NCBI GenBank assembly: GCA_026770705.1
Contig: JANJGN010000071.1
Coordinates: 2,108,001 to 2,172,000 of the forward strand
DNA: 64,000 bases
Direction: 5' to 3'
Source of the DNA: Isurus oxyrinchus
Lineage: Eukaryota
Shown: positions 6,545 through 48,292 of the stretch, piece after piece
Numbering within the stretch: position 1 is the first letter of the stretch
Layout: each line of letters begins with the position of its first letter
Notes under the pieces: generated by a model
Told to the model about the DNA's origin: nothing
The model's database searches: none
Seen by the model: the letters and a program-made list of their open reading frames with translations, nothing else
Made by a program: the position numbers and the translations under genes

Positions 6545-6684
6545 TCAAACAGTCTGTCGACTTCCTTTCACTGTTTGTCTCTCCCAGACACAGACTCCAG
6601 TGATAGTGATAACCACAGCCACAAGGAAGATCACAGCTCGTATTCCCAGGATCAGGATCACGTGCAGAATCTCTCCTCCACTGT
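6545..6684 (-). CDS. Gene A TM + short cytoplasmic exon: (D)SGGEILHVILILGIRAVIFLVAVVITITGVCVWERQTVKGSRQTV*
   Basis: Polypyrimidine acceptor ttctttctgtgtgttctctag, phase-1 frame, a ~28-aa hydrophobic stretch with internal Arg (CGA, 6640-6638), then TGA. This frame is not in the ORF track. Confidence 0.85.
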
Positions 6685-46000: not shown

Positions 46001-48292
46001 CTTTATCCGTTATGATCCAGACAGTGTTTTTCATTGCCCGTTATCCAGATGAATAATAATCAGTTGCTGTGATCTGGAAGGTGCTGCCTGAAAGGGCGCT
46101 GGAAGCAGATTTAATAGGATCTTTCAAAAGGGGAATTGGATAAATACTTGAAGGGGGAACATTTGAAGGGCTATGGGGGGAAGAGCAGGGGTGGAGGGGG
46201 GGTCAAAGATATGGCGTGTCATTATAATGATATTATACCTTAGGCTTATTTACTGTATAAGACAGAAAACACCAATCACTCATAGGGGATTTGGTGAGAA
46301 TGTTAATGATTTGTTTATCAAGACTCGGCACGAGAACAGTTATACATATGGAGAAAGATTGAAGGCATCAGAGCTGTGAGTGTGTGCTCTGCTCAAAGCA
46401 AATGTCAAACTAAGATTGGATCACATGACACACTTCCATTATAGTGATGTCACGCTGATACCCCTTATTGGAAATAGAGACAGTCCAGCCGTTGGTGTAA
46501 GGTTACAGTGTGCTCTGTGTCTGTGCTGCACTGACTCTCTGCTATATGATAACCACAGTGTGATATTGTGTTATTGCAGGAGAAAGACAGCGATGGAGGA
46601 GAGAGTTTCAGGGACCAGTGACATTGCATTGACCCCCAGGTCACTCTCTGTGAAGCACCAGGTACAGGAGCTGTTTACACTCACTCCAAAGCTTCAACCT
46701 CAGTGTGTAGACAACACGTATACCAGATTCTCAGCCGGGTTACACATAGATATCTCCCTGTGAAGCAATGGCTCAGTGGTCAGCACTGTGTCTCGCTCCC
46801 AGCCTCTGTCACCCTCCATCACTCGCTCTTTGACCAGAAATCTGAACACAATAATGACAAGGCACCTGATGTCAGTAGTGAGGGAGTGCTACACTGTCGG
46901 AGGGTCAGTACTGAGGGAGTGCTGCAATGTCAGAGGGTCAGTATTGAGGGAGTGCTGCACTGTCAGAGGGTCAGTATTGAGGGAGTGCTGCACTGTTGGA
47001 GGGTCAGTACTGAGGGAGTGCTGCACTGACAGAGGGTCAGTACTGAGGGAGTGCTGCACTGTCGGAGGGTCAGTACTGAGGGAGTGCTGCACTGTCGGAG
47101 GGTCAGTACTGAGGGAGTTGTGCACGGTCAGAGTGTCATTACTGAGGGAGTGCTGCACTGTCGGAGGGTCAGTACTGAGGAAGTGCTGCACTGTCAGCGG
47201 GTCAGTACTGAGGGAGTGCTGGACTGTCAGAAGGTCAGTACAGCGGGATTGTTGGACTGTCAGACGGTCAGTACTGAAGGAGTGCTGCACTGTCAGAGAG
47301 TCAGTACTGAGGGAGTGCTGCACTGTCGGAGGGTCAGTAGTGAGGGAGTGCTGCACTGTCAGAGGGTCAGTACTGAGGGAGTGCTGCACTGTCAGAGGGT
47401 CAGTATTGAGGGAGTGCTGCACTGTCAGAGGGTCAGTATTGAGGGAGTGCTGCACTGTTGGAGGGTCAGTACTGAGGGAGTGCTGCACTGTCAGAGGGTC
47501 AGTACTGAGGGAGTACTGCATTGTCGGAGGGTCAGTACTGAGGGAGTACTGCACTGTCGGAGGGTCAGTACTGAGGGAGTGCTGCACTGTCAGAGGGTCA
47601 GTATTGAGGGAGTGCTGCACTGTCAGAGGGTCAGTATTGAGAGAGTGCTGCACTGTCAGAGGGTCAGTATTGAGGGAGTGCTGGACTGTCAGAGGGTCAG
47701 TACTGAGGGAGTGCTGCACTGTCAGAGGGTCAGTATTGAGGGAGTGCTGCACTGTCAGAGGGTCAGTACTGAGGGAGTGCTGCACTGTCAGAGGGTCAGT
47801 ATTGAGGGAGTGCTGCACTGTCAGAGGGTCAGTATTGAGGGAGTGCTGCACTGTTGGAGTGTGATAGAGATTAAATTATAAAGAGAGAGAGAAAGAGAGA
47901 GAGAAAGAGAGACAGAGAAAGAGAGTGAAAAAAGGCTTAAACCCACTGAGACACGACTGACACTAACGAGGCTGCACAATAATTTAACCCTATCAGTGCC
48001 AGTAATTGATGTGAGGATGTCTTCTGTTTCCATTTCTCTGTAGGGTAAACAGAACGTGCTGATTACTGAGCCCCGGAACACAACCAGAGACACAACTAGT
48101 GAGGGGGAGACCCCAGCTCCCCGGGGTCTCTCTGAAGGTCCAGTGGGAGGCGATGTTGGACATGGGAACCCTGACAAACCCGACGAGCTTCTCTAAGCCA
48201 ACATCAACTTTTCAAAGCTGCCCGGCGGTGACAGGACTGTGCACAGGAGCGAGGACACGGAATACGCACAGATCAGGTTCCAGAAAAACTGA
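25476..48292 (+). CDS. Gene B: long Siglec-like receptor, inhibitory-type architecture (L-V-V-C2-[C2]x8/9-TM-cyt-cyt), with an in-frame TAA at the ITIM Tyr; ~1220 aa if repeat 5 is skipped
   Basis: Complete ordered exon chain with consistent phases (1-1 for Ig exons, 1-2 for TM, 2-0 for cyt1). Confidence 0.85.
29060..29428 (+). CDS. Gene B V1 exon (Siglec V-set)
   Basis: 369 nt, AG/GT; CVQIPC, DCSL, YFFR (Arg 29365-29367). Confidence 0.92.
30170..31015 (-). mobile_element. CR1 LINE fragment with an embedded Penelope-derived repeat
   Basis: EEDCNKLQDDI; the junction next to V2 is shared with the insertion next to gene A V2. Confidence 0.7.
31071..31439 (+). CDS. Gene B V2 exon (Siglec V-set)
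   Basis: 369 nt, AG/GT; same motifs (Arg 31376-31378) plus an extra Cys at 31169-31171. Confidence 0.92.
31811..32107 (+). CDS. Gene B C2-set exon (Siglec domain-2 type)
   Basis: 297 nt; CTFNTTC motif carrying the Siglec interdomain Cys; GTAAGT donor. Confidence 0.9.
32227..32620 (-). repeat. 33-bp minisatellite
   Basis: Same unit, reverse orientation. Confidence 0.95.
32753..33034 (+). CDS. Gene B tandem C2 exon 1
   Basis: 282 nt, phase 1-1; APQNLS..IICSVESFPASNLTW..DTGDYQCVAENEHG..ITVE. Confidence 0.9.
33904..34185 (+). CDS. Gene B tandem C2 exon 2
   Basis: 282 nt, AG/GT, near-identical to exon 1. Confidence 0.88.
34906..35187 (+). CDS. Gene B tandem C2 exon 3
   Basis: 282 nt, AG/GT. 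Confidence 0.88.
36036..36317 (+). CDS. Gene B tandem C2 exon 4
   Basis: 282 nt, AG/GT. Confidence 0.88.
37182..37463 (+). pseudogene. Gene B tandem C2 exon 5 with mutated acceptor (TAG>TGG)
   Basis: Open 282-nt frame, but the acceptor reads tttttgg at 37175-37181. Confidence 0.75.
38013..41066. mobile_element. Rearranged Penelope-like retroelement (GIY-YIG endonuclease 3' part) with inverted and direct terminal repeats
   Basis: ORF 39362-40129 NLVYCIRC..LYIGETKRKLGDRFAEH..GLN; inverted copy at 38544-38873; 13-bp TSD gtaattacagcgt at 38000-38012 and 41067-41079. Confidence 0.9.
40534..40572 (+). ncRNA. Minimal type I hammerhead-ribozyme-like motif in the Penelope terminal repeat (copies at 40926-40964 + and 38077-38115 -)
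   Basis: AGTT-CTGTCGA-A-GGGTC-atgag-GACTC-GAAA-CGTC-AACT; core has an A6U deviation. Confidence 0.55.
41595..41876 (+). CDS. Gene B tandem C2 exon 6
   Basis: 282 nt, AG/GT. Confidence 0.88.
42666..42947 (+). CDS. Gene B tandem C2 exon 7
   Basis: 282 nt, AG/GT. Confidence 0.88.
43738..44019 (+). CDS. Gene B tandem C2 exon 8
   Basis: 282 nt, AG/GT. Confidence 0.88.
44510..44791 (+). CDS. Gene B tandem C2 exon 9
   Basis: 282 nt, AG/GT. Confidence 0.88.
45605..45701 (+). CDS. Gene B TM exon RDSSKWTVGLFTAGIMLSVFLAGIFIFICVRK (uncharged TM)
   Basis: tttttacag acceptor, 97 nt, GTAAGT donor, ~24-aa hydrophobic run followed by basic residues. Confidence 0.88.
46580..46661 (+). CDS. Gene B first cytoplasmic exon
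   Basis: 82 nt, phase 2-0; RKTAMEERVSGTSDIALTPRSLSVKHQ. Confidence 0.85.
46871..47858 (+). repeat. 33-bp minisatellite (~30 units)
   Basis: Same unit. Confidence 0.95.
48044..48292 (+). CDS. Gene B terminal cytoplasmic exon: LL*ANI (ITIM with Tyr>stop at 48194-48196) and ITSM-like TEYAQI
   Basis: Phase-0 exon; the paralogs have TAC at the same codon; the original stop TGA is at 48290-48292. Confidence 0.85.

Follow-up and report, generated by a model that had tools for sequence, protein, structure and literature searches.

Does a shark carry an activating and an inhibitory sialic acid-binding Ig-like lectin (Siglec) side by side, in the manner known from primates? The question is raised by a stretch of 64,000 nucleotides (nt) from Isurus oxyrinchus (GenBank assembly GCA_026770705.1, contig JANJGN010000071.1, positions 2,108,001 to 2,172,000 of the forward strand), referred to here as the window, with all positions counted from its first letter. 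An earlier reading, made from the sequence only, proposed two divergently transcribed genes with a common Siglec ectodomain and opposite signalling ends. Exon models were obtained for both, gene A with its ATG at 15692 on the minus strand and gene B with its ATG at 25476 on the plus strand. The account judged moderately probable is that of an activating Siglec beside a disabled inhibitory-type one, within a duplicated and partly inverted Siglec cluster specific to elasmobranchs. The activating/inhibitory pairing at the locus is only partly supported.

Membership of the Siglec family is indicated by several features of the exons. The Pfam domains V-set and Ig_CD22 were found on all four V exons of the window and C2-set_2 on the C2 exons; the repeated 282-nt immunoglobulin (Ig) exon encodes an I-set domain of generic kind. 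When compared with solved structures, the V exon matches Siglec-5, Siglec-8, CD33 and Siglec-7 best (E 3e-13 to 2e-11). Siglec-5 scores 53 bits, with MAG or sialoadhesin close behind at 47, a margin too narrow to assign the exon to the CD33-related subgroup, while CD22 and Siglec-15 are much weaker (35 bits for Siglec-15). The strand-F Arg of Siglecs is present in all four V exons, the motif PYFFRIE aligning with SYFFRVE of Siglec-5, and the Cys pattern QEGSCVQIPC / GDCSLIINN corresponds to QEGLCVLVPC / KNCSLSI of Siglec-5, matching at the sequence level the three-Cys arrangement of Siglecs, with a pair of Cys by strand B and a third in strand E where other V domains have a B-F pair. The V domains are followed by a C2-set exon which matches domain 2 of MAG, CD33 and Siglec-10. 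With the domain models, structure matches, Arg and Cys pattern in agreement, the Siglec-like identity first proposed for the V and C2 exons holds. Judged from these features the locus is a real member of an elasmobranch Siglec expansion, and sialic acid binding is predicted.

Exons were searched for individually, and reading frames were checked by length and phase arithmetic. Gene A is encoded on the minus strand by a leader exon (15653-15692, MIGKSYFLLSLLQ, donor G/GTAATA), a V1 exon (11395-11760, 366 nt, phase 1-1, motif YYLFRTD), a V2 exon (9299-9664, 366 nt, motif PYFFRIE), a C2-set exon (8274-8570, 297 nt) and a last coding exon of 140 nt (6545-6684). All are open, with AG acceptors and GT donors in phase 1, and together they amount to 1209 nt or 402 residues. 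The last exon has an AG acceptor and translates as (D)SGGEILHVILILGIRAVIFLVAVVITITGVCVWERQTVKGSRQTV up to its stop. It contains an Arg inside the transmembrane (TM) span (LGIRAV), followed by a 12-residue tail, ERQTVKGSRQTV, which lacks Tyr. Gene A was therefore correctly described as having a TM Arg and a short Tyr-free tail, and it supplies the partner with a charged span and a motif-free tail that a paired-receptor system includes. The last intron holds a relic of an Ig-repeat exon (7785-7950, minus strand), of which only the second half is left in a frameshifted state.

Evidence for the splicing of gene A comes from contigs of four probable RNA runs (their kind was guessed by the tool), one from the same species and three from a close relative, placed on 6400-12400. 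The joint of the C2 exon to the Arg-TM exon (8274>6684), which skips 1589 nt including the Ig relic and is bounded by GT..AG on the minus strand, is present in three of the four runs and in both organisms. The sequence-only reading would have been contradicted by a lack of splicing into the 6684-6545 exon, and it is this joint that was found. The same three runs contain the V2-to-C2 joint (9299>8570), also GT..AG. The depth of the same-species run is far higher on exons than on introns; its contigs match 6400-6558 exactly, so that the 3′ untranslated region (UTR) of gene A reaches at least 6400, and the bins of the TM exon are covered with no difference listed. Gene A is probably expressed.

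Two further observations were made in these contigs. In short loose ends at 7797-7799, Ig-exon sequence runs on into the beginning of a neutral TM exon (AGAGACTCCAG, found also at 45607-45617) or into that of a further Ig exon, which suggests the existence of long-stalk transcripts of B-type or paralogous origin. The V2-C2 intron of gene A holds approximately 410 nt (9099-8689) missing from that of gene B, and one same-species contig skips exactly this piece (joint 8689>9099), indicating that a B-like or paralogous form of the intron is present in that run.

Gene B, on the plus strand, is considerably longer. Its leader exon (25476-25515) is followed by V1 (29060-29428), V2 (31071-31439) and C2-set (31811-32107) exons, and then by nine open 282-nt Ig exons between 32753 and 44791, starting at 32753, 33904, 34906, 36036, 37182, 41595, 42666, 43738 and 44510. 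The fifth of these has GG (37180-37181) in place of its AG acceptor and, though open, may be skipped. A neutral TM exon (45605-45701, RDSSKWTVGLFTAGIMLSVFLAGIFIFICVR), as had been claimed for this gene, a cytoplasmic exon (46580-46661, (K)RKTAMEERVSGTSDIALTPRSLSVKHQ) and a tail exon of the type carrying an immunoreceptor tyrosine-based inhibitory motif (ITIM) and switch motif (ITSM) at 48044-48292 complete the gene. An alternative membrane span at 46.4-46.6 kb was rejected, as a stop breaks its hydrophobic frame in both copies; the 46.5-kb piece belongs to the cytoplasmic exon, read in another frame.

The Ig array is interrupted by gaps after each of its first five exons and by transposon sequence at 37.6-41.5 kb. 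The gaps at 33056-33304, 34196-34338, 35195-35331, 36324-36601 and 37472-37637 each begin 6-21 nt past an Ig-exon donor, and a further gap (35383-35535) lies in the same intron as the third of them. In the ungapped Ig units, a CA-rich microsatellite stands where most of the gaps begin in the others. All runs of N within the two genes and between them are intronic or intergenic. Since every exon is whole and each Ig exon measures 282 nt in phase 1-1, the frame of gene B does not depend on the gaps. The count of nine Ig exons does, and is uncertain.

The signalling end of gene B is where the proposed pairing falters. The tail exon reads GNPDKPDELL, then an in-frame TAA (48194-48196) at the position where relatives have the ITIM Tyr, then ANINFSKLPGGDRTVHRSEDTEYAQIRFQKN to a second stop. 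Gene B as assembled therefore ends before both motifs, the ITSM-like TEYAQI lying downstream of the TAA, and is left without any cytoplasmic Tyr. Its product stops 32 residues short and, with all nine Ig exons in use, would be 1314 residues long. Both orphan tail copies of the window have TAC at this position. In the tails nearest to that of gene B, from basking shark and white shark, Tyr is found there in all but one, the white shark model P0197, which has Cys. Relatives with the Tyr carry the canonical ITIM LLY(A/T/I)N(I/V)NF followed by TEYAQI, and end in the form LLYANINF...TEYAQIRF, a proximal ITIM with a distal ITIM-like or ITSM sequence as in CD33-related tails. The ITIM/ITSM-type tail attributed to gene B is thus correct as to homology and incorrect as to the motifs encoded: as assembled, the gene is inhibitory-type by descent, not by content, and a partner with a functional ITIM is lacking from the locus.

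It is rather unlikely that A and B form a working activating/inhibitory pair in which the TAA stems from an error of assembly or marks a null allele, the gene being otherwise inhibitory with LLYANI and TEYAQI. Apart from the TAA the tail exon stays open as far as its normal TGA, with 88-89% identity to the intact tails of basking shark and white shark, the remaining exons of gene B are all intact, and the contig loose ends of the same-species run fit splicing of an Ig exon to a neutral TM exon. The assembled base nevertheless gives a stop. The loss of the Tyr in white shark P0197 implies that the residue is not uniformly constrained, and both orphan tails have the non-canonical LLY(A/T)NP at the ITIM position.

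Several points weigh against an expressed activating gene beside a disabled inhibitory-type neighbour. All contigs over the C2 exon of gene A carry the base of the B/C type at the private positions of A (8347 and 8391), and the contig which joins V1 to a leader has a leader with two bases unlike all four copies in the window. From the absence of the private bases and the foreign leader it follows that close paralogs contribute to the contigs. The V1-to-V2 joint was not seen in the contigs placed on 6400-12400 from the four runs. Part of the spliced transcripts may accordingly come from close paralogs, and the contigs do not establish a complete transcript of A itself. An upstream ATG (15714-15712, minus strand) lies 22 nt before the main ATG of gene A, out of frame and in strong context, and might limit translation. 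For gene B, the TAA may represent a single allele or, with lower probability, an erroneous base.

Some of the same evidence could be taken to mean that neither gene matters as a pair: the locus would be what is left of a multigene cluster with fast turnover, A and/or B being unexpressed or non-functional, and the spliced contigs would derive from paralogs elsewhere in the genome. The lack of A's private bases in the contigs and the paralog-type leader joined to a V1-like exon would agree with this, as would the orphan tails, the Ig relic in gene A, a V-less gene at 61.6-63.6 kb, the GG acceptor and the nonsense codon of gene B. This reading is nonetheless improbable, as the five coding exons of gene A are intact with good splice sites, the same-species run covers its TM exon and 3′ UTR with 6400-6558 exact, and a white shark model has this architecture too.

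The preferred account remains that of an activating Siglec next to a disabled inhibitory-type one, and it draws on the exons that the two genes have in common. Self-comparison of the window revealed a cluster of related gene pieces with more than two genes: four copies of the V exon, three of the C2 exon, nine of the 282-nt Ig exon with two fragments, three of the ITIM/ITSM-type tail and one of the Arg-TM exon. The leader peptide MIGKSYFLLSLLQ is identical in A and B, with G/GT donors in both. Identity in DNA between the two genes amounts to 95% for V2, 96.7% for C2 and 89% for the 5′ block, with a divergence of 3-18% over the shared blocks; the V1 type and the last exon are peculiar to A. Neighbouring genes with highly similar ectodomain exons, as expected of paired receptors, are thus present. 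All four V exons are intact, being 366 or 369 nt long in phase 1-1 with AG/GT sites and the Arg of the FR motif. Within gene B the V1 and V2 exons are 97% identical, inside a 616-nt tract (96.4%) which extends into the intron, and this likeness reflects a recent conversion or duplication. The V1 exon of gene A stands further off, at an identity of about 82% only with the other three, and clusters with the V1 of basking shark P0003. Of the shared elements first claimed, the leader and the near-identical C2 exon are upheld, and the common V-V framework with some loosening at A's V1. At the level of sequence the commonality of ectodomain exons between A and B is supported, and the patchwork of identity between copies fits gene conversion.

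The near-identical shared promoter included in the original proposal did not survive in that form. An 877-nt block with the leader exon occurs as an inverted copy in front of the two genes, at 15409-16285 (gene A, minus strand) and 24902-25759 (gene B, plus strand), with an identity of 89% only. Four copies of this 5′ block of approximately 0.9 kb are present in the window, at 16285-15409 (minus), 24902-25759, ~58963-59950 and 61070-61765 (all plus), and are 84% identical column by column. The outer part of each (16223-16143 on the minus strand; 24952-25044, 59001-59093 and 61120-61212 on the plus strand) matches a cytoplasmic coding exon, RKRSSTGRSHSV..., of the white shark CD33-like model P0017. 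The supposed promoter is thus partly the tail, or 3′ end, of an upstream tandem unit standing before each leader copy. The upstream ATG of leader A recurs in the leader copies at 59.5 kb and 61.6 kb and is absent from that of gene B; the white shark RefSeq isoform P0012 (MKYLGVDNDREILL...) begins at it.

The divergent orientation of the genes is upheld, in a looser arrangement than the head-to-head layout claimed, as 9.8 kb of sequence with relic exons separates the two ATGs. That this layout is an assembly artefact, caused by a misoriented contig or a collapsed duplicate, is very improbable. A 180-nt gap (20722-20901) does lie between genes A and B, in a repeat-rich region. The change of strand, from gene A (minus) to the orphan tails (plus), occurs at ~16.3-16.5 kb in gap-free sequence, which argues against a simple scaffolding error. 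The divergence of A from B over 3-18% of positions in the shared blocks, together with the V1 type and last exon found in A only, indicates that A is not a duplicate of B.

The interval between the genes contains exons which have lost their surroundings, along with 33-nt satellite arrays, transposon pieces and the gap mentioned above. The first of two intact orphan tail exons (17323-17571, plus strand) reads LLYANP and, further on, TEYAQIRFEHN before its stop, and has no V, C2 or TM exon upstream on its strand. It is followed by an orphan copy of the cytoplasmic exon (18745-18826, plus strand; RKTAMEERVSG...) and by a second orphan tail (20274-20522, plus strand; LLYTNP, then TEYAQIRFKRN before the stop). 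The LLYANP and LLYTNP sequences are outside the ITIM rule, with TEYAQI following in each. The orphan tail exons and the nearby V-less gene show rapid turnover of the cluster.

Further pieces lie downstream of gene B. A neutral TM exon of a third type (58106-58202, plus strand, RDSNEWKAGLLGAGICLSVGLSGFFIFKCVR), 97% identical to that of white shark P0017, stands just upstream of the 59-kb block. No V or C2 exon of its own was found upstream of it, only an Ig fragment at 56789-56860. A lone leader copy is located at 59537. The third gene copy (61663-63579, plus strand) has the leader MVGKSYFLLSLLQ, a V exon shrunk to approximately 30 nt before a donor at 62414-62428, and an intact C2 exon (63283-63579), and it runs past the window end. 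The 33-nt satellite arrays are intronic and intergenic, occur in both orientations (5294-5813, 16500-17184, 19845-20135, 32227-32615, 46871-47864 and 55126-55907) and yield long spurious open frames (TVQHSLSTDPL...). A transposon open reading frame with a GIY-YIG-like motif (Penelope-like) is present as two inverted copies at 38547-40126, in the middle of the Ig-exon array.

If the locus is read in this manner, the function of both genes can be outlined. The gene A product, of approximately 402 residues with a leader, two V domains of the sialic-acid type, a C2 domain and an Arg-bearing span, would most likely be an activating receptor. From what is known of paired receptors, its Arg would pair with the membrane Asp of an adaptor of the FcR-gamma or DAP12 type carrying the immunoreceptor tyrosine-based activation motif, and sialoglycan binding would lead to a Syk-type activating signal. 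A literature search for DAP12 or FcR-gamma in cartilaginous fish gave nothing decisive. Gene B has nearly the same V and C2 domains, carried by a stalk that may comprise as many as nine Ig exons, and continues with a neutral span and an ITIM and ITSM-type tail exon. Its truncated product may bind ligand without signalling, as a decoy-like or decaying copy. Intact relatives of B would be expected to recruit SHP-type phosphatases through LLYANI and TEYAQI.

The origin of the pairing was approached through relatives of these exons. A full HMMER search with one V exon returned 1303 proteins, the best matches being shark and ray RefSeq models named sialic acid-binding Ig-like lectin 8, 10, 12, 13 or 14, CD33-like or MAG-like. 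Bowfin and gar models of the Siglec-14/CD33-like or MAG-like kind were also found, and a woodchuck CD33-related Siglec was among the best 150 of the 1303 matches. With a basking shark protein as query, 114 matches were obtained at E<=1e-20, all elasmobranch. Relatives of the Arg-TM exon, identified by blastp among the retrieved proteins, are 78-93% conserved in RefSeq models of white shark (P0175, P0177, P0201), bamboo shark (P0023), cloudy catshark (P0006, P0078, P0157) and small-spotted catshark (P0188, P0221).

In a V-domain tree, elasmobranch forms of every tail type were placed in one clade with support of 97/95, apart from woodchuck, which with two sequences was the sole mammalian CD33-related taxon in a tree built without CD22, Siglec-15 or human Siglecs. 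Domains matching fewer than 85 query positions, such as the partial V1 of P0175, were excluded, and the deeper forks are weak. A single elasmobranch clade across tail types indicates an origin of the pairing inside the elasmobranchs, separate from that of the primate pairs. The sequence-only reading had offered an independently evolved or ancient system; the tree favours independence from the primate pairs, with one mammalian CD33-related taxon for comparison, while the deep forks that bear on the relation of the whole family to CD33-related Siglecs are weak.

That reading had also raised the possibility that the system is undescribed. No paper describing shark Siglec expansions or pairs was found in a literature search, which yielded no more than a brief remark in the whale shark genome paper. 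For many elasmobranchs, on the other hand, RefSeq models already show Arg-TM and ITIM/ITSM forms: the architectures, including V-V-C2-TM(Arg), are in NCBI automatic annotation as Siglec-12/13/14 or CD33-like for many sharks and rays. The paired design is thus known from primates, and the shark genes are predicted in public annotation with no describing paper found. A survey of teleosts by Bornhoefft et al. 2020 reported that fish regularly have only Siglec-1, CD22, MAG and Siglec-15, and no CD33-related ITIM-bearing Siglecs (PMC7226832).

The locus and the matching RefSeq models reveal a large Siglec expansion peculiar to sharks and rays, with tails of the ITIM/ITSM type, activating forms with the Arg-TM, V heads in tandem and stalks that can be extended. 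This expansion would shift the paired on/off Siglec design from a primate speciality to a recurrent solution of jawed vertebrates, and it offers a system for testing whether pathogens drive such pairs. The Arg-TM exon may represent an activating cassette kept across mackerel sharks, ground sharks (catsharks) and carpet sharks, and repeatedly combined with Siglec ectodomains found also on ITIM/ITSM tails, while the inhibitory-type partner is being retired here, with Tyr changed to a stop (and to Cys in a white shark copy). This is possible, though doubtful. If true, sharks and primates, hundreds of millions of years apart, would have come independently to the arms-race dynamic that has been put forward for primate Siglec-5/14 and Siglec-11/16. 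The narrower lesson at this locus is of an activating-type gene which is probably expressed, next to an inhibitory-type neighbour broken at its key residue as assembled.

Several known systems invite comparison. The skate MDIR genes are cited as an activating/inhibitory multigene family of the immunoglobulin superfamily in cartilaginous fish (PMC3031540), and so attest that paired families of this kind exist in cartilaginous fish. The MDIR V domains are of the CD300/TREM/pIgR type, whereas those of the shark locus are of Siglec type. Siglec-15 is a conserved vertebrate activating Siglec that is coupled by a positively charged TM residue to DAP12, DAP10 or FcR-gamma (PMC7226832). Gene A is similar in having a Siglec V domain and a positively charged TM residue. 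Unlike gene A, Siglec-15 has Lys in the TM, is a single conserved gene and has no near-identical inhibitory twin.

Closer likenesses are found in RefSeq. The white shark ‘sialic acid-binding Ig-like lectin 12’ (P0175) and the cloudy catshark ‘CD33-like’ XP_072325011.1 (P0078) have the exon types of gene A, in the same order V1-V2-C2-TM(Arg). The C2-TM junction ...LTVQ/DSGGE... is common to gene A and both models, and the TM exon is 82-93% identical. Both are automatic predictions named after the best mammalian match, for which no experimental or published description was found.

The primate pairs Siglec-5/Siglec-14 and Siglec-11/Siglec-16 consist of adjoining genes with nearly identical ligand-binding exons and a patchwork of identity suggestive of gene conversion. 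A charged TM and a short tail mark one of the partners and an ITIM-type tail the other, and inactivating alleles occur. The shark genes likewise adjoin, with similar ligand-binding exons, a patchwork of identity, a charged TM on A and an ITIM-type tail exon on B. They differ in that the shark V domains fall in an elasmobranch clade of their own and occur in tandem, with a variable stalk of 282-nt exons. At the shark locus, moreover, the ATGs are separated by 9.8 kb with relic exons between, and it is the inhibitory-type partner which is the disabled one.

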